DNA of 64,000 nucleotides from Mobula birostris (lineage: Eukaryota). The DNA is taken from NCBI RefSeq assembly GCF_030028105.1, contig NC_092383.1, forward strand, positions 86,199,921-86,263,920, given 5' to 3'. The notes beneath the pieces were generated by a model. The model made no database searches and had not been told where the DNA came from. It worked only from the letters and a program-made list of their open reading frames with translations. The position numbers were made by a program, and so were the translations under genes. Below, piece after piece: positions 1,110 to 56,259 of the stretch. Each line of letters starts with the position of its first letter. Position 1 is the first letter of the stretch.

Positions 1110-1430
1110 CGCTGCCATTGATTTCTGTCACGTAACTGCAGATATCTCCGTTGTTGAAGACTGTCGCATTAACCATTGCACTGGATCTCGCTCCAAGCCG
1201 ATTTGAGGCACTGCAGTAATATTGCTGGTGTGTGTGCTTGAAGGATTGACAATGCAGAGTCAGCTCATTGGTATCTGAGATCTTCGGATACCCAGATGAG
1301 GTTTGTTCATACCATCTGTATTGAATGGGAAGGGATCCCTGGAAGGACTCACAGGAAAGTGACACTGAGCCCCCGAGACATGAGACATTTGCTGGTGACA
1401 GATATCGAATCACAGGAACAGACACGAGTT
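1110..1430 (-). CDS. Gene 1 exon 3: second Ig domain (C2/I-type) with Cys-containing C-terminal extension
   Basis: tttcccacag acceptor (AG at 1432-1431), G|gtaag donor (GT at 1109-1108), 321 nt, phase 1-1, open: LVSVPVIRY..SLSCES..YRWY..YYCSASN..GDICSYVTEINGSG. Confidence 0.9.
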
Positions 1431-1493
1431 CTGTGGGAAAGAATTAAACATTCAGACACTGAATGAACATCTGAAAATCAGACACTCTTCTGT

Positions 1494-2010
1494 CACTTTA
1501 TTACGTACAAATATTAACCTGATCATTAATACAAATATCTAATCAGTCAATCAGACGATCAGCAACTCAACTCATCAAAGCATGCAGAAATATTCAAGAG
1601 TTTCAGTCAATGTTAGGCCAAAGTCAGAATGCGGAAGTATTGTGATCTAAGTACCTTTGAGCATGCAATTATTGCTGGTGCCAGACGGGGTAGTAAATAT
1701 CTAAGGCACTACTATCCTCCTGGGATTTTCACACACAACTGTTTCTAGAGTTCAGTGAGAATGGTACGAACAACATGAAAAAACATCCAGAGAGCAGCAA
1801 TTCTGTGAACAAAAGTGCTTTATTAATGAAAGAGGTCAGAGGAGAATGGCCAGACATGTTCATGCTGACAGAAAGGTGACGGGAATTCAAATAACCGTGG
1901 GTTATGACAGCGGTGTGCTGAAGAGCATCTGAAGGTACAACACGTCAAAGCTCGAAGTGGATGAGCCACAGAAGCAAGAGACCATGAACATCCACTCAGT
2001 GGCCACTCTG
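1494..2010. mobile_element. Tc1/mariner-like non-autonomous remnant in the V-C2 intron of gene 1
   Basis: Starts CACTTTATTA(C)GTAC and ends CACTCAGTGGCCACT; a homologous element sits at the same intron position in gene 3 (14616-16010). Confidence 0.6.
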
Positions 2011-2233
2011 TTATGACAGGAGGTTTAAAGGCAGCAACTTGTGAGATATCTGTCACATGTTTGGAGGCTTTCAGGAGAGAATGAAATTGTAACTGGGTTC
2101 AGAGACCTGCCGTATAGAGGGAGACATTTGGTACTGATATTAATGCAGAGATAGTGAGGGATGGACAGTGTCTGGCAAAGATCATGAGACTTTTATTTTA
2201 TGGAAGGCACAAATCAATCACTGAGAAACCTAC

Positions 2234-2548
2234 CATCATTTACTGTTAGTTTTAAATTAAATCTTGTATCGAGACCTGGTGTTGTAATTCCACAGCCGTA
2301 CCATCCTGAATCTCCAGAGTGAAGATCTTCCATAGTAACAGTAAATATTCTCCGTTCCGGGTTATCTGTGATTGACACTCGTCCACTCCGTCTGTGCTGC
2401 TCATTTGTTTGCACTAAAACTGAACAATAGAGAGTCCATCCATGGCACCAATACTTTGTGTGTGAGCGGTACTTTTCTTCATAGTGACAATCGATTGTGA
2501 TCGCTCTTCCCACAACTCCTCTTACAGATTTCTCTGCCCACAATGCAC
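2234..2548 (-). CDS. Gene 1 exon 2: CD300/pIgR-like IgV domain
   Basis: ccctcagtttcag acceptor, G|gtagg donor, 315 nt, phase 1-1, open; four-Cys pattern IDCHY..KYWC-x6-C..DSGWYGCG typical of CD300/pIgR/TREM V domains. Confidence 0.93.
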
Positions 2549-2980
2549 CTGAAACTGAGGGAGGCATTGTCAGATGTGAGGGAAAGGAACAATTTAATAC
2601 AACAATTATTTTTCAACATGACGGTAAAAACAGGTGCAGGTCATGTACAGCATGTGGTCCATGACAACACAGCCAATGATTTTTGTGTGAAGTGCAGTCA
2701 GTGCTGTTACTGTGTCAGCCGTGTCAGTGATCTCTCTTCCCTGTGTCGGTACATTGTGGGTTCACTTCCCACTCCAGAATCCTGAGCAGAAACCCAGGGC
2801 TGATCTTCCAGTGCACTGCTGGGGGAGAGCCGTAGTGTAGCCAGAGGGTGTTGACTCTATGGAATTCAATACCATACACAGCTTTTGAGGCCATGAAAGT
2901 GTTCAACTTTCAGTTGCTTCAGAATATGTCAGCCTTTGAAATGTCCACAGAGCTTCCAGCTATTTCATAAGATGCTCCCA

Positions 2981-2984
<4 letters not shown>

Positions 2985-3015
<31 letters not shown>

Positions 3016-3025
3016 CTGTGTGTGT
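2985..3025. repeat. (TG)n microsatellite in intron 1 of gene 1
   Basis: Direct reading of the TG run. Confidence 0.95.
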
Positions 3026-3830: not shown

Positions 3831-3907
3831 AGCATTCTTGTGAAAACGTTGTACGACCCCCAATCCAACACTGATTATGCAGTTGTCCAGTGCTGTCTGT
3901 AACTCAC

Positions 3908-3947
3908 CAGGTAGGAAACCAGTCAGAAGGATCAACGTCCTCAGCAT
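3908..3947 (-). CDS. Gene 1 exon 1: signal peptide MLRTLILLTGFLP(G)
   Basis: ATG at 3947, hydrophobic leader, G|gtgagt donor; phase 1 matches the V exon. Confidence 0.88.
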
Positions 3948-10310: not shown

Positions 10311-11143
10311 ATGCAATCATTTGATCAGAATAAAATAAAAGTTAATTGAAATTGGGTATATTTCCAGTCAATATTCAGGGGTATTAAAGACGAATGAACA
10401 ATGGAATTAAAAGTTGGGTGTTGAACAAAATGAGTGATTGCCTTGTTGCAGCTTGCAATGGTCAACGGGGTGTGAATCTGCAAATAGAAGTTGCTACTTT
10501 TCTCAGAGTTGACATGTAACTGTAACCCGTCGATGTACAATTCGCCTCGGAGCTGCTACATGAAGGGAGCTGTTTGCAGATGTAAAGATCATCACTCATG
10601 ATAACAAAATGCAAAATATTAGAAGATTCTTTGTAATCAGATAACAATGTGGTATAGCACAAGTTTTTTTCACACAGTGGATGAGAAAGAGAATAAGTAA
10701 GGCAAAAGGCCAGCATTACATTGAAAACTGCAGCAGGTCACTCTTATGCAGCGAGTTTCAACCTGGAATAAAACCGCAACCTACAATCCAATTTTGAGCT
10801 TATTATAGTTGTATATCTTTCACCTTTGATTGAGATGATGTCAGTTTCTTTGATTAATATGACAGAGGATTCACATTTTAAGGCATCAAGTTTCAGTAAC
10901 TGACAGACTATAGTTTCAAGATCAGGCACCTGAATCAGCATGGATAACTTCACTCACTCAACACTGAACTGATCATGACACAGAAACCTAAGGGCTCACT
11001 TTCAAGGACTCCATAACTCGTGTTCTCAGTATTTATTTATTTGGAGATTCAGCACAGAACAGGCTCTTTAGGCCCAATGAGCCACACTGCCCAGTAACCC
11101 ACCGATTTAACCCAGCCTAATCCCAGCACAGTCTTCACTAATT

Positions 11144-11444
11144 CATTTGACACAAGAAGATGGATTTCACTGTATGCTTCGAAGTTTTGATGTAAATTTG
11201 ATGAATATAAAGCTAATTTTTAAAAATAAAACAGAATATACATGCAATATTTCCTTCCCGACCCTGTAGCCCATTGGTTTCTACTGAAACTGAATATTGG
11301 TGACCAGTATTCCATGGCACCAATACATTGTGTGTGACTGATTTACTGTTGCATAGGGGCAATCATTTATGATCACCTTTCCTACAACTCCTCTTACCCC
11401 ATCTCTCCATCTCCACAATCCATCTCTCTCTAACCAAAAGTAAA
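11144..11444 (-). pseudogene. Gene 2 degenerate IgV exon
   Basis: Reads GVRGVVGKVIINDCPY..SHTMYWCHG, then a frameshift, YSVSVETNGLQGR, an AT-rich decayed middle and EIHLLVSN at the end; no C2 exon found downstream. Confidence 0.75.
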
Positions 11445-12913
11445 CTGAAATTGAAAGCAAAATTCTTGAGGATCTGAAGAGAATTCAGAATTGAAGCGAA
11501 TGAGGGTGAGAGACAACATGATAGAGATGTACAAGATGATCAGAGGCAGAGATCAAGCGGTGATCCAGAGAATATCTCAGGGCAGAAATGGCCAATGTGT
11601 GGGGGAATAATTTCAAGGTGATTGGAGGAAAGGATTGAGAGGGTGTCCGAGGCATGTTCTTTACACAGAGTGGTGGGAGCATAAAAAGCCTTACCAGGAG
11701 TGGTGGTAGAGGCAGATACACTTAAAAGACTCTTAGATAGGCTTATGGATTATAGGAGAGCTTTAGAAGGGATGGATTAGATTGATCTTATAGTAACACA
11801 CAAATGCCAGAGAAACTTAGCAGGCCAGGCAGCACCTATAGAAACAGGTACTGTCCACGTTTCGGGCTCAGACCCTTCAGCACCTACTCCCCAGTTTTCA
11901 GGAACAGTAATTACCCTTTCACCATCATACTCCTGAACCGATGTGGATAACTTCACTCACTTGAACTGTGAACTGATTCCACAACACATGGAATCAGTCT
12001 CACTTTCAAGGATTCTGCAGCTCATACTCTCAGTATAAAAATAATGTATTAAAATATGTGTATTTTTATCTGCACTATTTGTCTTCTTTTGCACCTTGGT
12101 TGTTTGTCTGACTTCATTTATGTAGGTTTACACAAATTCTATCACATTGCTTTATTTTTCTCTAAACGCCTGAAAGAAAATGAATCTCACTGTAGTATAT
12201 GCTGACATGCATGTACTTTGATAATAAATTTACTTTGACTTTGACTAGTGCAGCACTTTGTCAAAAGGCTTTTGAAAATCCAAGTAAACAACATCCACTG
12301 ATGGACAAAGTCTTGTTCCTCTATGCAGCCTGTTAATTCTTTAAGGAGTTCTAACAAATTTGGCAGGGTAGATTTCTCCTTAAGCAGATTATGCTGACTT
12401 CAGCCTATCTTACCATATACCTCCAAGTACTCTGAAACCTCATCCTTAATAACAGATTCTAACATCTTAGCAAACACTGAAGTCGGACTAATTGTCCTAT
12501 AACATCCTGCCTTTTGTCTCCCTCCCTTCTTAAAGAAATGAGTGACATTTGTAGTTTTCCATTCCTCTGGAACCATACTTGAAAGATTATTACTCATGCC
12601 TCTACAATCTCTTCAGTTAGCTCCTTCAGAACCATGGGGTGCAGTCCAAGTAACTGATCCTATTTCACAATGTCCTCTCTCCTATTTACACCATCTTCCC
12701 TCTCCACTCAGGTTCAATGCAGAGTCTCAACCCAAACCACCAACAATTCCCTTCCCCCAGACAGATGCTGCTTGGCCTGCTGAGTTCCTCCAGGAGATTT
12801 CTCTGAACTCCAGTTTCTGACATCTTTAGTGTCTACACGTATTCAAGCCCTGTTCTGGAAACAATGCAAACCAAAACTGATTATAAAAATACCCCATGCT
12901 GGTTGTCACTCAC

Positions 12914-12950
12914 TGGGTAGGAAACTAATCAGAAGAATCGAAATCCACAT
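12914..12950 (-). pseudogene. Gene 2 leader exon MWISILLISFLP (intact exon of a pseudogene)
   Basis: ATG at 12950, A|gtgagt phase-1 donor, homologous to the gene 1 and 3 leaders. Confidence 0.8.
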
Positions 12951-14097: not shown

Positions 14098-14325
14098 ACC
14101 ATGGTCAAGACGTTCAGTTGTTCTTCAGAACAAACATCAGAATGGGAAGAAATGTGTTCTAAGTGACTTTATTGTGGAATGGTTGTAGGTGCCAGATGGA
14201 GTAGTTTGAGTATCTCAGAAACTGATGATCTCCTGGGATTTGCACACACTACAGTCTCTAAAGTTCACAGAGGATGGTGCAAAAAATTGAAAAAAGGAAA
14301 TCTTGTGAGTAGTGGTTCAGTGCCA
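14098..14325. mobile_element. Tc1-like remnant abutting the truncated gene 3 C2 exon
   Basis: Same family as 1494-2010; joins directly to C2 coding sequence at about 14325. Confidence 0.6.
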
Positions 14326-14327
14326 AT

Positions 14328-14554
14328 TCCAGGCACTGCAGTAATATTGATGGTACTTGCATTGAAGGATTGACAACATCGAGCCACTTCATTGGTGCCT
14401 GATACCGTTGGATACCCAGATGAGGTTATTTCATACCATGTGTACTGAATGGGAAAGGATCCCTGCAAGGACTCACAGGAAACTGACACTGAGTCCCTGA
14501 GACGTGAAACATTTGCTGTTGACAGATATCGAAGCACAGGAGAAGACACGGGTT
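14328..14554 (-). pseudogene. Gene 3 C2 exon, frameshifted and 3'-truncated
   Basis: tttccacag acceptor, PVSSPVLRY..SVSCESLQGSFPIQYTWYE; 1-nt loss before QYYC; ends at YYCSA without a donor. Confidence 0.85.
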
Positions 14555-14615: not shown

Positions 14616-16010
14616 CCACTTTATTAGGTACACCTGTTCACCTGTTTGTAAATGCAAATATCTAATTAGCCAATCATGTGGCAGCATACTTACACACCTG
14701 GAGAAGAGGGATGCTGATGTGAGAATACTGTTCTTGGACCACAGTTCAGCATTCAACACCATAATTCCCTCCAGGCTTGACAAGATACTCAGAGACCTCA
14801 GCCTTCACCCTGCCTTGTGCAGCTGGATCCTGGACTTCCTGTCAGTTCACCGGCAGGTGGTAAAAGGGGGGTTCCCTCATCTCTGCCCCTCTGACCCTCA
14901 ACACAGGAGCCCCTCAGGGCTGTGTCCTAAGCGTCCTCCTTTACTCTCTGTATACTCATGACTGTGTTGTCACCTACATGTCCAATCTGCTAATTGTATT
15001 TGCAGATGATACTATATTGATTGGCCTTATCTCAAATAATAACAAGACAGCCTACAGGGAAGTCATCACCCTGACACTGTGGTGTCAAGAAAACAACCTC
15101 TCCCTCAATGTCGCAAAAACAAAGGAGCTGGTTGTGGATGACAGGAGGAATGGACACAGGCTAACCACTATTGACATCAATGGATCTGAGGTTGAGAAGG
15201 TAAACAGCATCAAGTTCCTTGGCATACACATCACCAAGGATCTCAAGTGGTCTGTACATACTGGCTGTGTGGCGTAAAAAGCACAACAGCACCTCTTTCA
15301 CCTCAGATGGTTGAAGAAGTTTGGCATGGGTCCCCAAATCCTCAGGACTTTCTACAGGGACACAATTGAGAGCATTCTGACTGGCTGCATCACTACCTGG
15401 TATGGGAACTGTACCTCCCTCAATCACAGGACTCTGCAGAGAGTGGTGTGGACAGCCCAGCACATCTGTGGATGTGAACTTCCCAATATCCAGGATATTT
15501 ACAGTGATAGGTGCATAAAAAAGGTCCGTAGGATCATTAGGGACCCAAGTCACCCTAACCACAAACTGTTCTGGGACAGCTTCTTCCATCAGGCCATCAG
15601 ACAGATTAATTCGTGCTGATACAATTGTATGTCTATGCTACATTGACTGTCCTGTTGTACATACTATTTATTACAAATGACTATAAATTGCACTTTGCAG
15701 ATTCAGACAGAGATGTAGTGTAATAATATTTACTCCTCATGTATGTGAAGGATGTAAGAAATATAGTCAATTCAATTCAACACAGTCCATAAAAGCATGC
15801 AGACATGGTCCAGAGATTCAGTTGTTGTTCAGGTCAAACATCAGAATGTGGAAGAAGTGTGATCAAAGTAACTTTACGCATGAAATGATTGTAAGCGGTT
15901 GTTTGAGTATCTCAGATAATGCAGATCTCCTGGAATTTTCACACTGTCTCTAGAGTTGGTAGAGAATAGTGCAAAAAACAAAAAAAAAAATCCATGGAGC
16001 AGCAATTCTA
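14616..16010. mobile_element. Tc1-like remnant split by a nested LINE
   Basis: CCACTTTATTAGGTAC start at 14616, resumes at 15781 and fuses to the V exon at about 16010. Confidence 0.6.
14691..15780 (+). mobile_element. Rex1/Babar-like LINE RT fragment (frameshifted)
   Basis: RILFLDHSSAFNTI..FADDT..KTKELVVD..KFLGIHI..IESILTGCITTWYGNC in ORFs 14719, 14978 and 15311; (TCAAT)n tail. Confidence 0.85.
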
Positions 16011-16014
16011 TAAG

Positions 16015-16306
16015 CATAAAATCTCGTATCAACACCTGTTGCTGTAATTCTACAGCCGTACCATCCTGTATCTCCCGTGTGAAGATCCTCCATAGTAACA
16101 GCAAATACTCCCCATTCCGGGTCATCTGTGATTGACACTCGGCTACTCCGTCCGTGTTGCCCATTTGTTTCCACTAAAACTGAACATTGTTGACTCTATC
16201 CATGGTACCAATACTTTGTGTGTGAGCGGTACGTTGCATCAGTGATAATCGATTGTGATCACTCTTCCCACAACCCCTCTTACATCTTTCTCCTCACACA
16301 ATGCAC
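16015..16306 (-). pseudogene. Gene 3 IgV exon, inactivated
   Basis: Close paralog of the gene 1 V exon; B-strand Cys to Tyr, frameshift, TGG to TAG, and 3' end plus donor deleted after GVDTRF. Confidence 0.9.
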
Positions 16307-17366
16307 CTGAAACTGAGGGAGGCATTTTCAGATTTGAGGGAAAGGAACAACTTCATGCAAACAAATATCTTGGAACACGAGTGTAAAAACAGGTCCAGGT
16401 CACGTCCAGAATGTGAACCATGATGAGCAACCAATAATTCCGGTATGAAGTGCAGCCGAACGTACACAAATATAACAGCCGTTTCATTTAGGATGCTGCT
16501 CTAATTTCTGATGGAAATCTTATATTTTGCATCTGTCAGGTATTTCTATGTGTAGTTGGAAGGTGGTGTAACAGTGGTCATTACCACTTCAGTGTCAAGA
16601 ACTCCAAGCATGATTTCAATTTCCATAAGGATATATTCAGTGTTTAAATCCAATTTATTAATTATTTCTAGAATTTATAACCACATATCAATGATGGTAA
16701 TAATCAACTACCAGATTTTCAAAATCCCATCTGGATCAGAAAAGCCTTTAGGGACAGAAATCTCTCATCCCTACCCACCCTGGCTTATCTTTGACTCCAG
16801 ATCTAGTTGTATTCTTTACTTAATTGCCCCAGTGAAATGGCCCAGGAAAGACACTGATATCAAGACAATGTCAGCGTGTTCCCTGCAGAGTGAAATCAGA
16901 TTCCAGCAATGGTAGACCTGATATTCCCACTGAACAGCCTCCAGGAGATTTCAGTAGCTGGATATATTCTCCCCCCACTTGGCTACACACTACTCCCTTT
17001 TTCCCTTTATCTGCTTCCACCTCTCAGCCATCTTCAAAATCCACCCCTTTTCCTCCCCATTCCATTTGCCTGTCATGCTTCACCCCTCCTCAGTCCCTGA
17101 CCACCTAGTGGACCCAGATTCACATCTCCCCCTCTCCTATTTACACTATCTTCCTCTCCACTCAGACTTGATGCAGAGACTCAGCCTAAACTGTCGACAG
17201 TTCTCTTCCCCCTAACAGATGCTGTTTGGCTCACTGACTTCCTCCGGAAGTTTGCTCTGAACTCCAGATTCAGTCATCTGTAGTGTCTGCACACATCAAG
17301 TTCTGTTCTGCAAATGGTGGACGACCTCCAAATCAATGCAAATGGCCAGTGCTTGCTGTCACTCAC

Positions 17367-17403
17367 CAGGTAGGAAACCAATCAGAGGAATTGAAGTCCA
17401 CAT
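17367..17403 (-). pseudogene. Gene 3 leader exon MWTSIPLIGFLP(G)
   Basis: ATG at 17403, G|gtgagt phase-1 donor. Confidence 0.8.
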
Positions 17404-35103: not shown

Positions 35104-35248
35104 TAGTGCTTTTTCGAAACTGCAAGTTGACTTTTTAGCTTTTTTGCTTCCTAGTACCATGCATTTATTTTTGTCTGGCTGGCAAGTTCTTTGTATGTGT
35201 CCTACTTTGTTGCACTTTCTGCAAGTTTCAGCTTTAAACCTGTATTTG

Positions 35249-35961
35249 TGTCACAATGGGGTGCTGGGAATGGACCCAAATACAAGAAACAGACACTGAA
35301 GTACAAGGAACAGGACTTGACTAGAGTAGGGACGTGACAGGATACAGACAAGGAGCAGGGACAAGAACGCAGACTAGGGCTTGGATCCCAAGCCAGAGAC
35401 TGGACAAGGACCCAAAACCTGGGTTTTGTCTCGGGCTCAGGCCCCAGAACCAGGCATGGACATGACATGACTGCAGGACTGGAGTTTGGGGTCTTGAGGC
35501 TTGAGGCTTGGAGACAGGCTAGGGGTCTTGAGGCTGGAGGCTTGGAGACAGGCTAGGGGTCTTGGTCTTGAGGCTTGGAGACAGGCTTTGGGTCTTGAGG
35601 CTTGGAGACAGGCTTGGGGTCTTGGTCTTGAGGCTTGGAGACAGGCTTGGAGTCTTGGTCTTGAGGCTTGGAGACAGGCTTGGGGTGCTGGTGTTGAGGT
35701 TTGGGGTCTTGGTCTTGAAGTGAGCAGGCAGAGAGTCAGGCAAGGTATCCAGGCAGAGAGTCAGGCAAGGGGGAAACAACAGGGAGGGGAGCAGGACAGT
35801 CCAGCAGGGAATTCCTGGTTTGTAGAAGTATTTATGTCTCAGCCCCAAAACGAGAAACATGTGACCCAAACAGAAACTGGGGAATATCAGAAACCCTGGA
35901 ACGAGGAACCATGGACCGGACCGTGAAGCGGAACACGGACTTTACGGACCGGACTATGACA
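35249..35961. mobile_element. Solo LTR inserted in the gag zinc-knuckle region
   Basis: TGTCA..TGACA termini; 5-bp TSD ATTTG at 35244-35248 and 35962-35966. Confidence 0.9.
35485..35720. repeat. About 27-34 bp tandem repeat inside the solo LTR
   Basis: About 7 variable copies of GGTCTTG(GTCTTG)AGGCTTGGAGACAGGCT. Confidence 0.9.
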
Positions 35962-37991
35962 ATTTGTTTGGTGAACATGAGCCCCTGACACAATGGTAAC
36001 ACAATTTGTTCAGCCAGGCCAGTTTATGTTTGGACAATGTAATTTGTCTACACTCACTTTCATTCCTGATTGCAATTTAATTGTATCTCTGTGTGTGGTT
36101 TCCATTGAAACAGCAATTTTACCTGCTCTCTCGAATGTAAGTTGTGCTACAGTTAGGAATCATTTGTGAATGCTTTCTTGAAAGATTCCACAAAATAAAT
36201 AATCTCTCAGTACATCTTTAAGCCTATTGTTGAGGTGACAATGGTCAGGCAATCTCTTCAATTCAGCCATGAACACTGAAGTGGGCTCCCCTTCTTTTAG
36301 ATTTTGCTTATGAAACCTAAAGCTTTCTGCAACAAACAGTGGCATTGTTTCTAAATGTTCTTGAGAATATTAGCAAAGCTAATTTCTGCTGGTTTGTTTG
36401 GAGCAGTCAAACTTTGAAGCAAACTATATGCCTTTAAAGGCAAAGTACTTGGAAAAATTTGCACTCATTTCTTGATGTCTATTACATTTTCTTCAAGCTA
36501 GTGTTGAATTAGTTCAGTATACATATTCCCCTGCCACGTACATGATTTCCCAATATGTCTGAGCGGCGTGGAGGGAAATTTTCCGCCAAATGGAAATTCC
36601 AGATGCGACCTAACAACGACGATACACATTCCAATTATCTGCTATGGAATCAGACAAGCCAATCTTTCTGATGTAGCCATCTGTGTCTGCTGTTTTAAAT
36701 GATGATTATCGCCCAGTACTCACTCTTTATGAATGGATGAATTCTTCTGATATCTGACTTTTTTAATACTTGATCGTGTTCTCCCTTCAGAAGAACATGT
36801 GCTGTGCTGTTTTTTAATTAAACTTGACCATCTTTCTATGTGCTGGGCTACGATTTTTTTAACTTGCAGTGTTTTTTTTTAGTTCAAATATTTCTCTGCG
36901 TTTCAACAGGTTGACAGCTACCTAACATTCATTTTAAAGATACGTCATCGCCAATGTATGTTTTGTAACTTCAAAACATCAAACTAATTCAAAAGGAAAT
37001 ACGGGAGTCGGGGAATATTCTTCACTTCATTCTTCACTTCAAGTGAGGCATGTATGTATCATGTAAATTAAATATATCTTCATTCTAGCTCACATGTAAC
37101 CCATAATTTATTATTTTCACACACACACAAACACACAAGATGACTCATATAGAACTGAAATACTAAATACAGCTTCCACTAGTAGGGGAGCCAAGGACAA
37201 AAGGGCAGTCTCAGAATGGACGGACATCCCTTCAGAACAGAAATAAGGAGGAATATCCTTCATCAGAGGTGGTGAATCTGTGGAATTCATTATTACAGAT
37301 GGCTGTGGAGACCAAGTCATTGGGTATATTCATTAGTGAGGGCATTAAAGCTTACAGGGAGAAGGCAGGAGAATAGAGTTTACTGGGATAATATATCAGC
37401 TATGATAGAATGCCGAAGCAAACTTTACGGGCCAAATGGCCTTACCCTGCTCCTGTGTTTATGGCCCTATGGTCTTGATTCCATCAAGAAAATCCAGGAA
37501 CCTGAATGTGATCTGTTCACCATGTTTGAATTTTCATTCTCAACTAAGCCAAGAGGATAAATTAGTTATTAGCATCAACAATTTGTTAATAAGAATATTA
37601 GCTGATTGTTTATTAATTATTGAAACATACAACAACAACCTCAGGCATTTGAGTCCATAGAACAGCATTTAATAGAGTAAACTGGTCTTAAGCAGTTCAC
37701 AGCCATGACAGGGTTAAAAATCGTTGCTTGCGCAATGAAAAGAAAACATTGTGAAAAGGTGCCATACAGTTGAGATCTGTGAAGGTGACATGTTGGAAAT
37801 GGAATGCTAAAAAAAGTCAAAGTCCTTACGTATGGTAACATTATTTTTTCACCTTCATGAAGTTGTTAATGAATGACAAGAGAGGTTAATTCACAGATGT
37901 TAAATTTGTCTATATTCTGAAAAAGTATGACTATTTCATCTTGGTGTGAAATTCCAGCAGAATCTGTGTGATCCAGAAGCCTTCACTTTAC

Positions 37992-38030
37992 CTTATAGAC
38001 CAGTCTGGGAGGATCTGATTCATCGCGTCT
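37992..38030 (-). CDS. Gene 4 cytoplasmic exon RRDESDPPRLVYK
   Basis: ccatttccttttgcag acceptor, AAG|gtaaag donor, 39 nt, phase 0-0, matches the TM exon phase. Confidence 0.7.
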
Positions 38031-38248: not shown

Positions 38249-38336
38249 CTTGGTTTCCCTTGTGAACCACGTGACCGAAATAGTGCAGATCAGGAAAGCG
38301 AAGAGCAGCCAACAACCAACCTTCCATATCATGAAA
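38249..38336 (-). CDS. Gene 4 transmembrane exon (S)FMIWKVGCWLLFAFLICTISVTWFTRETK
   Basis: cttcccctttacgcag acceptor, AAG|gtagg donor, 88 nt, phase 2-0, hydrophobic helix with a Lys near its N-terminus. Confidence 0.82.
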
Positions 38337-39846: not shown

Positions 39847-41266
39847 AACAAAGGTTCTGAACTTAAAGAGGGGTAACTTTGAAGGTATGAGACGTGAATT
39901 AGCTAAGTTAGACTGGCAAATGACACTTAAAGGATTGACGGTGGATATGCAATGGCAAGCATTTAAAGGTTGCATGGATGAACTACAACAATTGTTCATC
40001 CCAGTTTGGCAAAAGAATAAATCAAGGAAGGTAGTGCACCCATGGCTGACAAGAGAAATTAGGGATAGTATCAATTCCAAAGAAGAAGCATACAAATTAG
40101 CCAGAGAAAGTGGCTCACCTGAGGACTGGGAGAAATTCAGAGTTCAGCAGAGGAGGACAAAGGGCTTAATTAGGAAGGGGAAAAAAGATTATGAGAGAAA
40201 ACTGGCAGGGAACATAAAAACGGACTGTAAAAGCTTTTATAGATATGTAAAAAGGAAAAGACTGGTAAAGACAAATGTAGGTTCCCTACAGACAGAAACA
40301 GGTGAATTGATTATGGGGAGCAAGGACATGGCAGACCAATTGAATAATTACTTTGGTTCTGTCTTCACTCAGGAGGACATGAATAATCTTCCAGAAATAG
40401 TAGGGGACAGAGGGTCCAGTGAGATGGAGGAACTGAGCGAAATACATGTTACTAGGGAAGTGGTGTTAGGTAAATTGAAGGGATTGTAGGCAGATAAATC
40501 CCCAGGGCCAGATGGTCTGCATCCTATAGTGCTTAAGGAAGTAGCCCAAGAAATAGTGGATGCATTAGTGATAATTTTTCAAAACTCGTTAGATTCTGGA
40601 CTAGTTCCTGAGAGTTGGAGGGTGGCTAATGTAACCCCACTTTTTAAAAAAGGAGGGAGAGAGAAACCGGGGAATTATAGAACGGTTAGCCTAACGTCGG
40701 TGGTGGGGAAACTGCTGGAGTCAGTTATCAAAGATGTGATAACAGCACATTTGGAAAGTGGTGAAATGATCGGACAAGGTCAGCATGGATTTGTGAAAGG
40801 AAAATCATGTCTGACGAATCTCATAGAATTTTTTGAGGATGTAACTAGTAGAGTGGATAGGGGAGAACCAGTGGATGTGGTATATTTGGATTTTCAAAAG
40901 GCTTTTGACAAGGTCCCACACAGGAGATTAGTGTGCAAACTTAAAGCACACGGTATTGGGGGTAAGGTATTGATGTGGATGGAGAATTGGTTAGCAGACA
41001 GGAAGCAAAGAGTGGGAATAAACGGGACCTTTTCAGAATGGCAGGCGGTGACTAGTGGCATACCGCAAGGCTCGGTGCTGGAACCCCAGTTGTTTACAAT
41101 ATATATTAATGACTTGGATGAGGGAATTAAATGCAGCATCTCCAAGTTTGCAGATGACACGAAGCTGGGTGGCAGTGTTAGCTGTGAGGAGGATGCTAAG
41201 AGGATGCAGAGTGACTTGGATAGGTTGGGTGAGTGGGCAAATTCATGGCAGATGTAATTTAATGTG
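39847..41266 (+). mobile_element. Internal fragment of the young CR1 subfamily, truncated at both ends
   Basis: Near-identical to about 30434-31855; no 3' tail. Confidence 0.9.
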
Positions 41267-41573: not shown

Positions 41574-41619
41574 CTTGCAGTTGATACTGTTGTAAATGTT
41601 TCACATGAATATTCACGTC
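41574..41619 (-). CDS. Gene 4 hinge exon (G)REYSCETFTTVSTA
   Basis: tttctttccttgcctcaacag acceptor, AAG|gtaagt donor, 46 nt, phase 1-2, bridges the C2 and TM exon phases. Confidence 0.8.
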
Positions 41620-43957: not shown

Positions 43958-44278
43958 CAGTGCCAGTGAACTGAATCACAAAGCTGCAGTTGTCTCCTCT
44001 GTTGTCGATGGACACGTTCACTATTTCACTAGACTTTGCTCCATGAGTATTGGAGGCAGTGCAGTAATATTGATAGTGTTGGTGTTTGAAGGATTGACAA
44101 CGTAGATCCAGTTGACTGTTTTCAGAGACTTTTGAATCCACAGATGAGATATTTTCATGCCATGTGTACTGAATGGGAAGGGATCCCTGGACAGACTCAC
44201 AGGACACTGACACGGAGCCCCCAACACACACGATATTTGCAGAAGACAGATATCGAAGCACAGGAACAGACACTGGTT
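43958..44278 (-). CDS. Gene 4 C2-type Ig exon
   Basis: tttcccacag acceptor, G|gtaagt donor, 321 nt, open, phase 1-1, paralog of 1110-1430. Confidence 0.9.
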
Positions 44279-44589: not shown

Positions 44590-46345
44590 TAACACACAGA
44601 AATTACTGGAGGAACTCAGCAGGCCAGGGAGCACCTACAGAAAAGAGTACAGTCGACATTTTGGGCCAAGGCTTTTCAGCAGAACAGGAAGATGAGGACT
44701 CAGAGTCTGAGGGTGGGAGGAGGGGAGGGAGAAACGCAGGGTGATAGGTAAAACCAGTAGGGGGAAGCATAAAGTGACAGGGAGGGGAGAGGTAAAGGAA
44801 AGAGTTGGGAAGTTGATTGGTGAAAGAGATACAGGGCTGGAGAAAGCAGAATCGAATAGGGAAGGACAGAAGGCCATTGAGAAAGAAAAAGGGGGAGGAG
44901 CACCAGAGGGAAGTGATGGGCAGGCAAGAAGATAATGTGAGAGAGGGAAATGGGAATGGGCAATAGAGAAAGGGGGGGGGAGGAACATTACTGGAAATTC
45001 GAGAAATCAATGTTCATGCCATCAGGCTGGAGGCTACACAAACGGAACAAAAAGTGTTGCTCCTACAACCTGAGTGTGGCCTCATCACAGCAATAGAAGA
45101 AGCCAGAGACTGACAGGTTGGGATGGGATTGGGAAGTGGAACTAAAATGGGTGGACACTGCAAGGTCCCGCTTTTTCTGGTGGATGGAGTGTATATGCTC
45201 GGCAAAGTGGTCTTCCATTCTACTTTGGGTCTCACTGATATACAAGAGGCCACACCGGGAGTACCGGATACAATAGATGACCCCAACAGACTCACAGGTG
45301 AAGTGTCGCCTCGCCTGGAAGGACTGTTTTGGACCCTAAATGGTAGTGAGGGAGGAGATGTAGGGGCAGATGTAGCAGTTGTCCGCTTGCAAGGATAAAT
45401 GTCAGGAGGGAGTCTGTGGGGAGGTGTGAATGGACATGGGTGTTGTGCAGGAAGTGATCCCTGTAGAAAGCAGAAAGTGAGGGGAAAGGAAAGATGTGCC
45501 TGGTGACGGGATCCCATTGGAGATGGCAGAAGTTTCAGAGAAATATGTGATGGAGTTGCAGCTTAACGGGGTGGTAGGAGACAACAGGAGGAACCCTAAC
45601 ACTGATGGGGTGGTGGGAAGATAGGGTGAGGGCAGACGTGTGTGAAATTGAAGAGATGTAGTTGAGGGCAGTGTTGATAGTGGAGAAAGGGAAGCCCCTT
45701 TCTTTCAAGAAGGAGGACATCTCTATCCTCCTGGAGCGAAAAGCCTCAACGTGAGAGCAGATGCAGTACAGAAAGAGAAATTGAGGGAAGGGGTTTGGTA
45801 TTTTTACAAGTAACAGGGTGGGAAGAGGTATAGTCCAAGTAGCTGCAAGAGTCATTGGGGTTTGTAGCAATCTTCAGAGATAAACTGTCTCCAGAGATAG
45901 AGACAGACAATTTGAGGAAGGGAAGGGAGGTGCTGGAAAAGGACCTGGAAATTTAGAGTCAAAGTTGATGTAGTCAATTAGATCGGCATGGGTGCAGGAA
46001 GCAGCACCAATGCAGTCATCGACGTAGCATTGGAAACGTGAGGGAGAGACACCAGTATAGACTTGGAACGTAGATTGATCCATGCAGCCAACAAAAAGGC
46101 AGGCATAGCTGCGACCCATGCAAGTACCCATAGCTATTGTTTGAAGGAAGTGGGAGGAGCCAAAGGAGAAATTATTGAGAGTGACGATAAGTTCCGCAAG
46201 ATGGAGGAGAGTGGTGATGGAGGGGAACTGATTGGCTCTGGTGTCCAGAAAGCAGCAGAGACCTTTGAAGCCTTTCTGGTGGAGGATAGAGGTATGTAGG
46301 GAATGTACATGCATAGTGAAAATAAGATGCTCGGGGCCAGAGAAC
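44590..46345 (-). mobile_element. Penelope-like element (RT + GIY-YIG remnants) in the V-C2 intron of gene 4
   Basis: RT-like IFTM..SLHTSI..TLNNFSFGSSHFLQT..AMGT..YVDDC (ORF 45874..46485); GIY-YIG-like YISETQSRMEDHFAEH..THFSS (45063..45245); terminal repeat at about 44590-45000. Confidence 0.8.
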
Positions 46346-46588
46346 CGGAAATCAGGGTGGCATTTCATACAGTTCAGAGGCAGGAAAATGTACTGAGCCT
46401 TTCCACTGGAAATTGTTGGCCAGTCAGTGGGACGGACAACATGTGGGGTTCCCAAACCTTGCCCATCCCCCACAGGGCTCTGCACTGCTGAGGAGCCTCA
46501 GGATATCCATGCTTCTCTGACACTTCCTCGAGCAAATATGGATCAGACATTTCACTGGACACATAAAGGTAATCAAGGAGAAACCTAC

Positions 46589-46908
46589 CGTCAGATACTT
46601 GTAGATACACGTCAAACACTGGATGATTGCCAGATGTTGCAATTCCACATCTGTAAACTCCTGTATCTTGAGAGACAAGATTCTCCGTAGTAACAGTAAA
46701 TATTCCCTGGGATGTGTTATCTCTGATTGTCATTCTTCCATACTGCTCATTTGTCCCATTTGTATTCACTAACGATGTGCATTGGCGATCCCACATGCGG
46801 CACAAATACTTTGTGTGTGAACGGTACTTTGGTCATAGTGACAATCGATTGTGATCGCTCTTCCCACAACTCCTCTTACTTTGTTTTCTGCCCATAAAGC
46901 ACCCAAAA
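46589..46908 (-). pseudogene. Gene 4 IgV exon with one 1-nt deletion
   Basis: ctccctcag acceptor, G|gtagg donor, 320 nt (321 expected); frame shifts at GAC CA AAG TAC (about 46828-46832); otherwise open with four Cys. Confidence 0.8.
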
Positions 46909-47134
46909 CTGAGGGAGAAATTCTTCTGAAAATGGACAGGTAAAATTCAAATTTACACAAGCAGATTCAAGATTGCTTCATGTCATTTCCTCTATACAAA
47001 TATAAAGGAGAACAAAACCATTGTTCCTCCGGATCTGAAGCAGCACAGAAAAAGCAAATGATAAAGAAAGCAATAATAATAAAAAGAGATGTTTTATTTA
47101 AAGCTGTCAGTGTGTTCTAAGGAATCTACCACAC

Positions 47135-48850: not shown

Positions 48851-51550
48851 CTGAAGGTGAGGAAGGTACTTTAACCAGCAACCTGAAACTCAGTTTCAGT
48901 AGTCACAATGTTAATTGGGCTGCTCAGGAAATCCTAAAGCTGGTGATGATCATAACACAATGAGATCATAAGACATAGGAGAATTAGGCCATTCGACCTA
49001 TATCGACTGCTCTGCCATTCCATCTTGGCTGATTTATTATCCCTCTCAATCTTATTCTCTTGCCTTTTCCCTGTAACCTTTAATGCCCTCACTACTCAAA
49101 GACCGATCAAACTCAGCTTTAAATAAACCCGATGACTCGGCCTCAACAGCCATCTGTGGTAATAAATTCCACAGATTCACCACCATCTGGCTAAAGAAAT
49201 TCCTCCTCATCTCAGTTCTAATGCTGTCTGTTAGGGGTCTGTACTTCTTCCACGTAGAATGCATAGGCTTTCCCCGGCTGCTCCAGTTTCCTCCCACAGT
49301 CCAAAACCATGTTAATTGGTCCCTGTTAATAGTCCTGTGATTATGTTAAAATTATCAGCTTTGTCGAGGGTTAATGGGGCAGCATGGCTTGAAGGGCCAG
49401 AATGGCCTATTCCGGGCCAAATCTTTAAATAAATAAAAAGAAAGAATGTTCTTGTAAGGAGCAAGCCCAGGTACATTACAAGATCAAGAGCTCATTTTAT
49501 GATACTAGGAGACCATCCAATAGTTTCACAACAGTGAGAAAGAAGCTGTCCTTGAAGTTTGTAGTACATGCTTTCAGACTTTTGTAATTTCTGCCCGATA
49601 GGAGGTGAGAGGAAGAGAATATGTCAGTGAAAGTTGGATCTTCAATTAGATTGGCTGCTTTACCAAGTCAGTGAAAAGTATTAAAAACAATAAAAAATAT
49701 AAATTACTGCAAATATCCAAAAAGTATAATTTTGTATGTATGCACACTTGTGTGTAACAATCAGGATGTGGGGAGAAGCTGAGGTAAATATCTAGAGATT
49801 CCACTGCACTCACAGTTGAAGGATCTAATAAAGGAAAGATTGCATTTGCTTAAAACCAGCTCTCCTATAAAAATCAATTCCCGCCAAATCCCACACTGGT
49901 TTGGACATTGATTGCTGAGCTCTTACTTGTGTCATGTCAAAATTTTTTCTCATCTGAACTGTGGAATATCTTCAACAGACCCAGCAGAAGACCTACAGTG
50001 AATGTCTTAGGGCAAGCAGTTTGACAATCACATGAGCTCATTACAGACAGAGAGCGGATTAATGAGAGCAGGGCAGTGGATGTTGTCTATCTGAAACTCA
50101 ATAAGGCCTTTGACAAGGACCCATTAGTTCAAGATGGTCTAGCAAATTGAATATAACATTGGCTTGATGGGATGAGTTAGTGGATTGTCATGGGGGGTTT
50201 TCAAATTGGAGGTTTTGCATTTTGGCAAGTTAAACCACTGCAAGACGTACAGTAAATGGTCGGAGGATGCTATGGAGAATGTTGCAAAAAAGTGATCTGC
50301 TCTTCCAGGTACATTGTTACCTGAATATGATGACACAGGTAGACAGGATGGTGAAGAAGGCATTTGGTACACTTACTTTGTTAGTCAGGGCACTGCGTAC
50401 AAGATTATTATATTATGTTATGGCTGTACAAGATGTTAGTGAGACTACTCTTCAAATACCATGTGCAGATGTTGTCTCCTGATAATAGGAAATATATCAT
50501 TGGACTGGAAAGGGTGCAGCAGAAAAATCATGAGGACATTCCTGAGAATGAAGGGATAGAGTTATAATGGAGGGTTGGAAGGATGAGACTTTTGCCCTGG
50601 AGCTTAGAATGCTGACGGGTCATTTAACAGAGGTATATAAAATCATGAGGGGCACCTATAAGGTGAATGGTCACTGTCTTTTTACAAGGGGAGGGGACAG
50701 TAAAGCCAGCAGGTGCAGGCTACAATTTAGCGGTGAAAGGTCCTAAAGAGCAATTTTATACACAGAGGGTCTTAGGTATATGGAACAACCTGCCATAGCA
50801 ATCCATAGGAGTGGGAGCATTTACAACATTCAGAAGACATTTTGACAGATACATGAGTAGGAAAGGCTTAGAACAAGGGTTCACAAACTTTTTTGCCATG
50901 TCCCCCTACCATTAACTAAGGGGTCCATAGAGTCAGTGTCACTGGTTAATTTGCTCTGTAGTTTACAGAACTGAATTTATGCACCTCAGTTTGTTTATTT
51001 ATGTGTAATCCATTTGCAGATCTCATCCCCACTTTCATAAGTTATTATGTGTTATGCGTGTTACACCCTGGTTTGGAGAAACATTGTCTCGTTTGATGGC
51101 ATACATCTATATAGTTATATGACAATAAAATTCACTTGACTTGACTTGACTGGTCTTGACCGCAGGTTGGGAATCTCTGGCAGAGAAGGATATGGGATAA
51201 ATAAAATTACAGGTGCTCTACCTAGATGAAAATCTCGGTTGACTTGGACGAGTCAGGCTGACGGGCCAGTTGTTCTAGTAAACAACAAGCACTTTATGAC
51301 TCAGAACATGAGTTTCAATTGCTATGCTCAAATTATTAAATATTTGGAAAAATAAATTTATCTTTGATCTCAGGCTTGACGCATGTACAAGAAAATCAGG
51401 AATATTCAGATTCCAACACATCATTTCATTGAAGTTAATCATGTCAGATAAGTTTAACACCAGTTAAAGAGAAACATAGTTCTCTCCCAGCTGGCTCTAT
51501 TTGAAAGCAATTACAGTGAAATCCCCTGTAGAGAGAACCTAATACTTTAC

Positions 51551-51629
51551 ATTTGAGGTGATGTAGTTTTTTTCCTTTCTGCAGTTGTCATCGATTCTGT
51601 CACATTATTTTTACAGAAATGATTTCGCC
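51551..51629 (-). CDS. Gene 5 hinge exon (G)RNHFCKNNVTESMTTAERKKTTSPQ
   Basis: ttttattttcttttaacag acceptor, AT|gtaaag donor, phase 1-2, GRxxxC start as in gene 4. Confidence 0.72.
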
Positions 51630-52930: not shown

Positions 52931-53430
52931 GGTAAGATTCCATAGACTGTCCAGTATTCCCTGGTATTGGAAGCCTTCTAACTGCATCTGTTTCAGCCTG
53001 GTAAAATATTGCAGCTTTCTATGAGATCACCTTTCAGTCTGGTGAACTCCAGGAAATAAAAACCTGATCAACCAATTCTCTGTTCTTGTGTCACTCATGG
53101 CATCCCAGAAATCAGTCTGCTGATCCTTTGCTAGCTTCCTTCCATAACAAGAACATCTTTCATCAGACCAAAACTGTTGGTGACATGAGAGTGAGGATGA
53201 AGAGATTGTCTGACTGATTTAAGCTTTAGGCCAGAATGGAAAAGTGGGGTATGCGCCAAATTGAGGCAGCGAGTCCCAGGCACAGGAGCGTATCGAAGCA
53301 GCACGAACCCCCTACCATCTAAGCCATGTGTACTGGATATTGTGTTCCAACAATACAATATCCAGTACACATCAGTCACTCAGTTGTACTCCATTGACAA
53401 TCATAAAATATTAAACTCTGCACTACTTAC

Positions 53431-53751
53431 CCATTCTGTTGACATCAATCACATTTCTGCAGTTCCTGACATTGTTGGAGATGGACACGCTGATCATTTC
53501 ACTAGTCTTTTCCCCATTATCATTTGAGACTTTGCAATAATACAGATATTTTTTGTATTTTAAGGATTGACAATGTAGATCCAGTTTATTGGTAACAGAG
53601 ATCTTTGAATCCACAGTTGGGGTCTTTTCGTACCATGAATACTGAATGGGAAGGGATCCATGGCCAGACTCACAGGACACTGACACATAGTCCCCACAAC
53701 CTGAGCCACTTGTTAGTGGTGAAAATCGAAGCAAAGGAACAGACACGGGTT
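53431..53751 (-). CDS. Gene 5 C2-type Ig exon
   Basis: gttttccacag acceptor, G|gtaagt donor, 321 nt, open, phase 1-1. Confidence 0.9.
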
Positions 53752-54629
53752 CTGTGGAAAACAACCAATAAACATCTGAAAATCAAACACAGTAAAGATT
53801 TCAGCAGTTCTGTATCTCAACCAGGACCCACACGTCTGGAATCTCAGCAGCTCCTCTACCTCTCTGTGTCTCTGCATCCTCTTATCTGCCCGAACTGCCA
53901 TATCTGCCATTATCCCTGAACACAGCAGGTCTCCAGATCAGGACAGCAGTGATGACACTGAGTATGTATCTGTGTGAAAATCAGAGTTACAAACTCTCTC
54001 AGCAGCAAGGAGACAGTCTAATGTTGCAACCAACAGCTTGACTCTGAAAAGGCAGCACTTGTGGGTGTCCTGGAAACCTATCAACTTCTGCTTTAAATAT
54101 ATCCAATAATTTAGTCTCCACAGACTGTGGCAATGGATTCCACAGATTCACCAGCCGCTGGCTAAATAAATTCCTCCTCATCTCTCTTTTTTTCTGAGTC
54201 TGTGCCCTCTGGTCTTAGAGGTCCACACTACAGGAAGCATCCTCTCCACAACCATCAGCTTTTCTGTGCTCATTCTTCTAAGCTCCTGCAAGTGCACGCC
54301 CAGAGGTTTCAAACACTCCGCATACATCTGGGGAATTTAATATCTGGAGCCCTTTAGAGTTGATGTACAGAGAGTTTTTGGGGTTCAAGTCCATTGCTCC
54401 CTGAAAGCTGCAACACAAGTGGAAATAATGGTAATGAAAGCATTCAGCACATTTGCATTCTTCATTTTACATATTGGAAACTAAAGCTGACAAGGCATTT
54501 TGAAGCTTCATAAGACTTTGTTTAGGGCACATTTGCAACATACAATAATTTGTGATTCTGATAGCGACAGTATAGAAAAGATGTGGAGGTTTTAGAGAGG
54601 GTAAAAAGGTCATCAGGGTGTCACCAGGG

Positions 54630-54910
54630 CAGCATTGTAGACTAATGGTTAGCACAAGGCTTTACCGTGGCAATTTCTGCTGCTCTGTGTAAGGAGTTTG
54701 TGTGTTCTCCCCATGTCCACGTGGGTTTCTTCCAGGTGCTCTGGTTTCCTCCCACAGTCCAAAGACCTAGAAGTTGGTAGGTCAATTGGTTGTTATAGAT
54801 TGTCTGAGTTTGAGGCTGGGGTTAAGTCTGGGGGATTACTGGGTGGCACGTCTCAAAGGGCGTGAAAGGCCTCTCCACGCTATATCTCAATCAATGAATA
54901 AATCAAATAA
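54630..54910 (+). mobile_element. tRNA-derived SINE (V-SINE/HE1-like)
   Basis: A-box-like TAATGGTTAGCAC, core GGTTTCCTCCCACAGTCCAAAGAC, (AATA)n tail. Confidence 0.6.
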
Positions 54911-55931
54911 ATGAATAAATGTTACCTGGATTGTAGCTATGGGGAGAAGTTTGACAAACTTGGATCATTTTCGCTGCAGTATAGGAGGCTGAGGAGAGAC
55001 CTGATAGAAGTTTATGAAGTTATAGAAATCATAGATAGGGAAGATAGAATCTTTTCCCAGGGTTTAAATGTAAAATGATAGTGAGCATCGTTTGAAGGCA
55101 ATAGGGGGAATGTTTAAAGAATGTTTTCGAGACAAGTTTTATTTACTCTGAGGGTGCTGACTGCATGAAACACACCGACAGACTGGCTGGTAGAAAGGGA
55201 TATCATAACAATATTTAAGAAGCTTTTGGACATGGACATGAAAAGGGAGGGGTTGGAGAGATATGGACCACATGCAGTAAGATGGAAGTAGCTTAGAATG
55301 ATAGCATGGTCAGTGTAGACATGGTGGGCCAAAGAGTCAATTCTTGGGCTGTACATTATATCAATTTCTCCCTAACCCCATTGCTCTATTTCCCACCAGG
55401 AATGGGCTGAATGGGGAGGCTGGCTACCGGGAAGTGGATGGTTAGTGGGTGCTGGCGGGTGGTTTATGAGAGCACAGAGAGAGTGCCGGGTAGGGGTGGG
55501 AGTGACTGATCCATGAAGCAGGGATGGGAAATGGAATAGACTGCCCTGGGAGGACTGAACACAATCTGTAGTGATCTGGATCTGATTCCCTTTTTATGCT
55601 TTTTGAAGTGTTTAGACCATGTGAAACACTTGTTTCTCATTGACCTGTAAATATCAGATTCTTAGTTTTAGTCTGAATGCAAACCACTGTCAGAGCAACA
55701 TTTCATATGGTTCAGAAGCAGGATAATGTGCTGAGCCTCCCACTGGAAACCAGAGGGTCAGATCCCACACTGGGTGAGAGCAACTGGAGTGGGATTTCCG
55801 AACCCAGCACCCTCCCGCAGGGGCCTGCTCTGTAACAGAGCCTCTGAATATCGGTGCTGCCCTGACACTCCCCAGAGAAAACATGAATCAGACACTTCAG
55901 TGGAAAGATAAAGTCAAAATCGGAAACCTAC

Positions 55932-56259
55932 CAACAGATACTTGTAGATGCACGTTAAATATTGGAGGATTGCCAGATGATAGAATTACACATATATAAT
56001 GCCCTGCATCATTAGGGTCAAGGTGCTCCATAGTAACAGTAAATATTCCCTGGGATGTGTTATCTCTGATTGTCATTCTTCCATACTGCTCATTTTGCCC
56101 ATTTGTATTCACTAACGATGTGCATCGGCGATCCCGCATACAGCACAACATCTTTGGGTCTAAGCGATACATTGGTGCATAGTGACAATTGATTGTGATC
56201 GCTCTTCCCACAACTCCTCTCACTTTATCTTCTGCCCATAAAGCATGAGGGAGAAGTTT
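55932..56259 (-). CDS. Gene 5 IgV exon (open frame; 5' boundary uncertain)
   Basis: ALWAEDKVRGVVGRAITINCHY..MLCC..RRC..DAGHYICV..VHLQVSV, G|gtagg donor; ancestral acceptor removed by an 8-nt deletion. Confidence 0.75.

Follow-up and report, generated by a model that had tools for sequence, protein, structure and literature searches.

Modular domain immune-type receptors, or MDIRs, form a multigene family of chondrichthyans; they are receptors of the immunoglobulin (Ig) superfamily that occur as paired forms, inhibitory and activating. MDIR1-5 of the clearnose skate were reportedly described by Cannon and colleagues in 2006, in Immunogenetics 58:362. Here we report on a stretch of 64,000 nucleotides (nt) from the giant manta ray, Mobula birostris (NCBI RefSeq assembly GCF_030028105.1, contig NC_092383.1, positions 86,199,921 to 86,263,920 of the forward strand; hereinafter the window, in whose own coordinates all positions are given), in which Ig exons of the V and C2 types are distributed over five units, named A, F, B, C and D from the lower to the higher coordinates. 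The original prediction, made from the DNA alone, had taken these units for five tandem V+C2 receptor genes in two subfamilies, undergoing birth and death. Our analysis shows that the window is part of an MDIR cluster, that is, of a known family, and holds no new kind of system. Its contents are very probably the start of one live gene (gene A), dead cassettes in units B and F, and a single disabled multi-cassette gene formed by units D and C together.

Relationship to MDIRs and to other described receptors

Relatives were sought with the V domain of unit A (V_A; the other domains and exons are named likewise) in a profile-free search of 1.8 billion protein representatives, which returned many elasmobranch proteins. 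Among the matches of searches seeded with close relatives were three UniRef entries of the clearnose skate, Rostroraja eglanteria, named 'Modular domain immune-type receptor 2', '3' and '5'. With MDIR5 as the tblastn query, V_A was recovered in the window at 64% identity (E=7e-40) and C2_A at 59% (E=5e-36), and the skate MDIRs are 57-66% identical to the batoid relatives of the window's genes. Skate MDIR1-5 are direct homologues, which bears out the original assignment to an MDIR-like family; they share with the manta genes the alternation of V/C2 cassettes, the occurrence of both activating and inhibitory forms and the many copies, and differ in host species and order (the manta ray belongs to Myliobatiformes). 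MDIR5 is a V-C2-V-C2 protein with a WKVGRW membrane span, and MDIR2 a V-C2 protein whose tail carries an immunoreceptor tyrosine-based inhibitory motif (ITIM). The relatives come from rays, skates, sawfish, sharks and the elephant shark; their architectures include V alone, V-C, V-C-C, V-V-C, V-C-V-C and V-C-V-C-V-C and extend to eleven Ig domains in the longest model, and their automatic names vary within the family among pIgR-like, CMRF35-like, FCRL5, CXADR-like and A33-like.

The properties of the manta genes follow the same pattern. The modular ectodomain is represented in the window by two V and three C2 lineages. The inhibitory form is gene A, with an uncharged transmembrane segment and the ITIM IVYADL (both encoded off the window), and the activating form is unit C, with a transmembrane segment of the WKVGRW type, now mutated. 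At least 10 distinct M. birostris products are encoded on one 99.8-Mb chromosome, many of them with consecutive accessions, and the window alone has five V exons in 55 kb. As far as the literature that we read goes, its genomic detail reaches beyond the skate complementary DNAs in the 321-nt phase-1 exons, the two to three acceptors of the V exons, the reuse of a stalk exon as an interdomain linker and the pseudogenised cassettes. Since the family has been known from 2006 onwards and RefSeq already lists the live gene, albeit with a name that says little, the locus as such is of modest interest. The skate MDIR work is cited in PMC3031540.

By sequence, the V domain is closest to D1 in the polymeric immunoglobulin receptor (pIgR) and to CD300 structures. 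When the V-C2 pair was modeled with AlphaFold (predicted local distance difference test score, pLDDT, 86), a fold search matched CD300lf and CD300a (target template-modeling score, TM-score, 0.83-0.91; root-mean-square deviation 1.5-2.0 Å; 38-40% identity). The V domain of the CD300/CMRF35-like receptors (structures including CD300lf, CD300a and CD300f) has a second, C-C', disulfide, as here, and CD300s and MDIRs have in common the paired activating/inhibitory logic of a charged transmembrane segment or an ITIM. However, a CD300 ectodomain has just one V domain, carried by a mucin-like stalk, and not the alternation of V with C2 domains that is seen here: all V exons except the decayed V_F precede a C2 exon, and gene A encodes four Ig domains. 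Moreover, the single mammalian CD300 sequence included in the trees does not cluster with the V domains of the window. The match to pIgR D1 scores 45 bits (160 bits in total over the five V domains of pIgR), and the four cysteines and the KYWC and YxCG motifs of D1 all align with V, the four cysteines of V_A corresponding to the two disulfide pairs of D1. The description of V as CD300/pIgR-like is therefore apt. Yet pIgR is a single gene that encodes nothing but V domains in tandem (mammals have five of them, teleosts two) and a transcytosis tail, whereas MDIRs have C2 domains that alternate with V, tails with an ITIM or a charged transmembrane segment, and dozens of paralogues.

The C2 domain finds its best profile match in FCRL5 (212 bits over 6 domains, ~35 bits per domain), with FCRL4 at 38 bits, followed by VSIG4, CD22 and CAR. 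The likeness is that of one domain type, for which we claim no orthology: FCRL proteins lack an N-terminal CD300-like V domain, and FCRL and classical FcR ectodomains consist of C2 domains only (the FcR D1-D5 subtypes), whereas the manta proteins begin with such a V domain. The best two-domain superposition of the V-C2 model is with D1-D2 of Siglec-5 (V-set followed by C2-set; query TM-score 0.56), where at 21% identity the resemblance is architectural only.

Ig exons of the window and the live gene A

Using tblastn with the window's own open reading frames (ORFs) and nhmmer with nucleotide profiles, followed by direct reading of the DNA, we found five exons of the V type and four of the C2 type, and no more. 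All of them lie on the minus strand, and Pfam assigns the former to V-set (6e-13) and the latter to Ig_3/Ig_2:

2240-2555, 11253-11403, 16012-16313, 46593-46909 and 55936-56245, minus strand: V exons, as delimited by nhmmer
1111-1430, 14321-14554, 43959-44278 and 53432-53751, minus strand: C2 exons, as delimited by nhmmer

Thus the five V units with a four-cysteine V domain on the minus strand were correctly predicted, as was the length of exactly 321 nt for all three intact C2 exons (1110-1430, 43958-44278 and 53431-53751, with CCACAG at the acceptor edge and GTAAGT at the donor edge; 1110, where the predicted cluster began, is the last base of the first of them). Of the five V+C2 units, the V exons stand but only four have a C2 exon, unit F having none. 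Each Ig domain is encoded by one 321-nt exon in phase 1 at both ends, so that cassettes can be duplicated, lost or skipped without a break of the reading frame. The V exons have tandem acceptors 6 nt apart (2549-2560, 46903-46930 and 56225-56262, minus strand), with a third one 17 nt further upstream in the D3-type exons.

The short exons (leader, linker, stalk, transmembrane and tail) were located with the help of homologous full-length proteins. Leader exons, defined by an ATG and a phase-1 GTGAGT donor, were found in units A, F and B only (3908-3947, 12914-12950 and 17367-17403), and the same procedure yielded none for units C and D in the window. A tblastn search of the window with 130 tails of the family for transmembrane and tail exons of the ITIM type gave only noise outside the exons of unit C. 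An Rfam scan gave no match, and Pfam recognized only domains of long interspersed nuclear elements (LINEs) in the remaining ORFs.

The exons of gene A in the window are:

3908..3947, minus strand: leader exon, coding part, MLRTLILLTGFLP, phase-1 donor GTGAGT
2234..2554, minus strand: V exon, D1-type, 321 nt, four cysteines, donor GTAGGT
1110..1430, minus strand: C2 exon, D2-type, 321 nt

V_A has two tandem acceptors 6 nt apart (CAGTTTCAG), and the reading frame of the unit is open. Spliced together, the three exons encode 227 amino acids identical to residues 1-227 of the M. birostris proteins XP_072134916.1 and XP_072134917.1, which RefSeq names 'polymeric immunoglobulin receptor-like isoform X1' and 'X2'. 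These proteins have the architecture V-C2-V-C2, followed by a stalk, an uncharged transmembrane segment and a tail with the ITIM IVYADL. Hence, one live inhibitory receptor gene of four Ig domains begins in the window, with the first 2.9 kb of its 23.7-kb span inside it and its remaining exons (D3 V, D4 C2, stalk, uncharged transmembrane and ITIM tail) to the left of coordinate 1. XP_072134916 and XP_072134917 differ in the presence or absence of 'VS' between D2 and D3; this difference, which separates isoforms X1 and X2 of two annotated manta genes, would be explained by a choice between two proximal tandem acceptors, such as those seen at V_A, in the V exon of D3, which lies outside the window.

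Units D and C as probable cassettes of one disabled gene

Upstream in the direction of transcription lie the exons of units D and C, which the original prediction had counted as its fourth and fifth genes:

55932..56259, minus strand: unit D V exon, D3-type; open frame, damaged acceptors
53431..53751, minus strand: unit D C2 exon, 321 nt; open, consensus splice sites
51551..51629, minus strand: linker/stalk exon downstream of C2_D, 79 nt; entered in phase 1 and left in phase 2, donor GTAAAG
46589..46925, minus strand: unit C V exon, D3-type; three acceptors, 1-nt deletion
43958..44278, minus strand: unit C C2 exon, 321 nt; open
41574..41619, minus strand: unit C stalk exon, GREYSCETFTTVSTA, 46 nt
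38249..38336, minus strand: unit C transmembrane exon, activating type, 88 nt; WKVGRW motif reads WKVGCW
37983..38030, minus strand: unit C short cytoplasmic tail exon, 48 nt; RRDESDPPRLVYKVK and a terminal stop

Among these are the short hinge, transmembrane and tail exons whose existence had been anticipated (51551-51629, 41574-41619, 38249-38336 and 37983-38030). The stalk, transmembrane and tail exons downstream of C2_C are bounded by consensus splice sites and keep a common frame when joined. In several stingray proteins, a stalk-like peptide separates a C2 domain from the V domain that follows, and the third V acceptor was found only upstream of V exons of the D3 type, which would allow an exon ending in phase 2, such as the linker, to be joined to a V exon. 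The Hemitrygon protein P0217 reads ...EVNRM-GKIHFCEN...TTSPQ-I-TISPSVSGDLWAEDKVRG..., and splicing C2_D to the linker, and the linker to V_C by way of the acceptor at 46925, yields the same string from the window. Residues 192-686 of P0217 are colinear with V_D, C2_D, linker, V_C, C2_C, stalk and transmembrane exons in this order, and the in-frame join of C2_D, linker and V_C is also as in the Hypanus protein P0158. Given this colinearity with one Hemitrygon protein and the in-frame splice by way of the linker and the third acceptor, the most plausible reading is that units D and C each supply one cassette to the same disabled gene, which is of the activating type, and form one relic rather than two. 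An alternative assignment of 51505-51550 as a decayed uncharged transmembrane segment with stops was rejected because a GTAAAG donor stands at 51550 and the linker can be joined to V_C in frame, colinear with P0217.

Both V exons of this gene are damaged. In V_D, an 8-nt deletion erases the two proximal acceptors and throws the far one (56259) out of frame for the phases of the upstream exons of the family, leaving a cryptic site, GGGCAG before AA at 56231, as the sole in-frame acceptor; the conserved tryptophan is gone and one additional cysteine is present. V_C has acceptors at 46925 (for phase-2 entry from the linker) and 46908 and a mutated proximal one. It carries a single 1-nt deletion outside any homopolymer (GCA to G-A), which leaves an exon of 320 nt with the frame shifted after CHY. 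In the transmembrane exon of unit C, a cysteine replaces the arginine that 45 of 45 relatives keep, and the segment is one residue short. Exons of unit C or D were found in none of the M. birostris proteins among 270 collected relatives, including in a search aimed at the combination of C2_C, stalk and transmembrane exons. An ORF that extends beyond the donor of V_C and enters the intron (46374-46589, minus strand) resembles the C-terminus of the Hypanus model P0034, and a YVDD-type motif occurs in 45874-46485; both intron read-through in the annotation of P0034 and a shared element are possible.

Positional domain types

The original prediction grouped the units into two subfamilies, A, F and B against C and D. 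For the V exons the pairing holds: V_A and V_B are 84% and V_C and V_D 86% identical at the nucleotide level, against ~62-72% between the groups, while V_F is ~55% identical to the other V exons, with indels. In the V-domain tree, V_C and V_D belong to a 14-row clade (bootstrap 100; Shimodaira-Hasegawa-like approximate likelihood ratio test, SH-aLRT, 99) of third-position V domains, taken from four-domain proteins of Mobula, Hypanus and Hemitrygon. V_A groups with first-position V domains, and the nearest rows of V_B are also of the first position, though in no strongly supported clade. Since V_C and V_D cluster with third-position V domains across stingray genera, the split reflects position in the protein and predates these genera. 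Judged from their sequences, then, the two V 'subfamilies' are positional domain types (D1-type and D3-type), not two gene sets. The D1-type V has its own leader and the D3-type V is without one. The C2 exons do not follow the two-subfamily scheme but fall into three supported clades, one with A and B, one with D and one with C, at 69-75% nucleotide identity for the pairs among A, C and D. C2_D shares its lineage with the D4 domain of M. birostris P0159, and C2_C with the D4 domains of Hypanus P0158 and M. hypostoma P0155. Constraining C2_C and C2_D to group with each other lowers the log-likelihood by 99 units (approximately unbiased, AU, test p=1e-15), a result somewhat weakened by the fact that the pair was chosen after the tree was seen. 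In both the V and the C2 trees, the MDIR domains nest among batoid sequences, and a branch with 97% SH-aLRT separates V domains of the MDIR type from the teleost and caecilian pIgR-like and mammalian CD300H V domains, in agreement with the family placement.

Dead cassettes in units F and B

Between gene A and the D+C relic lie the predicted genes 2 and 3, which are dead 5' cassettes:

12914..12950, minus strand: unit F leader exon, intact, MWISILLISFLP, donor GTGAGT
11120..11460, minus strand: unit F V exon relic; 24-nt insertion, frameshifts, stop; heavily decayed
17367..17403, minus strand: unit B leader exon, MWTSIPLIGFLP, donor GTGAGT
16012..16312, minus strand: unit B V pseudo-exon, D1-type; cysteine to tyrosine twice, 2-nt deletion, in-frame TGA and TAG, donor lost
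14321..14554, minus strand: unit B C2 pseudo-exon, D2-type; 1-nt deletion, 12-nt insertion, 3' end and donor lost

No C2 exon was detected by nhmmer after V_F, and hence the unit at 11-13 kb consists of a leader and a decayed V exon only. The leader of unit F is identical in 12 of 12 residues to the N-terminus of XP_072134915, an 820-amino-acid product of an 83-kb gene model whose accession directly precedes that of gene A. Further exons of XP_072134915 were not found in the window. Should the model be correct, the whole of gene A would lie inside its first intron, and the link could be either real long-range splicing or an annotation artefact. The leader sequence of unit B is absent from every relative protein collected. 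A reverse transcriptase fragment (RVT_1, 1e-05) lies at 14978-15274 (plus strand), within the intron between V_B and C2_B.

Repeats and turnover

Disabling lesions were found in four of the five V units, and the states run from the open unit A to the barely recognizable V_F, as the original prediction had described. Young LINE copies, ~97% identical to each other, lie between and within the units and point to recent retrotransposition in the cluster; together with the lesions, their presence in introns supports the predicted rapid turnover. They comprise a near full-length element with ORFs for an APE endonuclease and a reverse transcriptase and two ~97% identical fragments, one of them within the introns of unit C:

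29542-32574, plus strand; 33649-35160, minus strand; 39847-41266, plus strand: LINE and fragments

Other repeats include two diverged copies (78% nucleotide identity) of another LINE family in opposite orientation at 58313-63656, an ORF at 59782-60606 (plus strand) with a GDSL-esterase-like domain as in ORF1 of CR1/L2-type elements, and a minisatellite at 35486-35704 (33-nt unit, 6.8 copies, 86% matches) that adjoins a LINE fragment. Inverted repeat copies at 21033-21116 (minus strand) and 10359-10421 (plus strand) match the last 28 residues of M. hypostoma P0048 (82%). The match at 21033-21116 was considered as a terminal exon and rejected, being a repeat with an inverted copy at 10359-10421; the C-terminus of the P0048 model is probably repeat-derived.

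Alternative explanations

How firmly the D+C relic can be held apart from other readings depends on the splice junctions, the trees and the state of the exons. Outside gene A, the junctions were deduced from consensus sites and orthologous protein models; these models are themselves Gnomon predictions, and the domain trees were built on ~105 columns only. The open C2_D, linker, C2_C, stalk, transmembrane and tail exons could permit partial expression by skipping of both damaged V exons, and no 5' end for the D+C gene came to light in the window, where 56.3-64 kb is LINE sequence. These points weigh against a dead D+C gene and are taken furthest by the proposal that D and C make up the 3' portion of a gene that still functions and would have its leader and first cassette to the right of the window, with the V exons skipped or the cryptic acceptor at 56231 used. 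Six of the eight exons are indeed open with consensus splice sites, the Ig exons are all of phase 1-1 so that skipping is frame-neutral, the M. hypostoma isoform X3 (P0048) is annotated with its D3 V exon skipped, and the phase-2 end of the linker could join the transmembrane exon directly. We nonetheless consider a living gene improbable: its exons occur in no M. birostris protein among the 270 relatives despite the search for the C2-stalk-transmembrane type, the invariant membrane arginine has become cysteine in a segment one residue short, V_D has lost both its conserved tryptophan and its acceptors, and C2_C shares no more than 77% identity with the corresponding domain type of M. hypostoma, a species of the same genus.

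Five independent tandem V+C2 genes, each with short hinge, transmembrane and tail exons and forming two gene subfamilies at various stages of birth and death, would account for the five V exons lying head to tail on the same strand and for their pairing as A/B and C/D (84-86%); two-domain V-C2 proteins such as MDIR2, P0055 and P0179 are also known in the family. This, too, we judge unlikely, and five separate two-domain genes are not supported, since the annotated product of gene A comprises four Ig domains and is encoded in part outside the window, leaders were found in A, B and F but not for C or D, D and C join in frame through the linker exactly as in Hemitrygon P0217 and Hypanus P0158, unit F is without C2, and C2_C and C2_D are not sisters (AU p=1e-15). 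Accordingly, counting V exons overestimates the number of genes in such clusters. Still less credible is orthology of the manta genes with pIgR, CD300 or FCRL, which is what their names in RefSeq ('polymeric immunoglobulin receptor-like', 'CMRF35-like', 'Fc receptor-like 5') imply; while V resembles pIgR D1 and CD300 and C2 resembles FCRL5/4, V/C2 alternation occurs in none of the three, a single gene family bears five different automatic names, the V domains form a chondrichthyan clade of their own apart from pIgR-like and CD300H, and a large multigene family is unlike the single-copy pIgR.

Implications

The preferred reading, an MDIR cluster segment with one live gene and one disabled multi-cassette gene, would place along the minus strand, from 5' to 3', the D+C relic, unit B, unit F and the start of gene A. 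The disabled activating gene would extend from ~56.26 to 37.98 kb, through V_D, C2_D, linker, V_C, C2_C, stalk, transmembrane and tail; unit B is a dead leader-V-C2 cassette and unit F an intact leader above a dead V. Gene A apart, this region of the cluster is cassette debris of duplication and decay. The ectodomains are built of alternating cassettes of CD300/pIgR-like V and FCRL-like C2 domains. By analogy with mammalian paired receptors and from the motifs of the family, V is the putative ligand-binding end, the ITIM form is predicted to recruit SH2-domain phosphatases and dampen signaling, and the forms with a membrane-span arginine may pair with an adaptor carrying an immunoreceptor tyrosine-based activation motif.

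Two further ideas are speculative and rather doubtful, namely that MDIRs are the Ig-binding (Fc or polymeric-Ig) receptors of cartilaginous fish, or that cassettes or leaders are spliced across gene boundaries. The former is suggested by the combination in MDIRs of a pIgR-D1-like V with an FCRL-like C2; a survey reported no pIgR, FcRL or classical FcR homologues in cartilaginous fish (PMC4016189). The latter is suggested by the leader of unit F being the apparent exon 1 of an 83-kb model that would need to extend over all of gene A and, if true, would mean that one cluster yields receptor isoforms combinatorially. The analysis corrects the misleading automatic names (pIgR-like, CMRF35-like, FCRL5) given to a gene of the manta ray. 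Beyond this, the window offers a base-pair view of how the 'modular' MDIRs are built and rebuilt: because the Ig exons are all of one size and in phase 1, acceptors can be chosen among and the linker exon can be used again, V-C2 cassettes can be added, dropped or killed whole.

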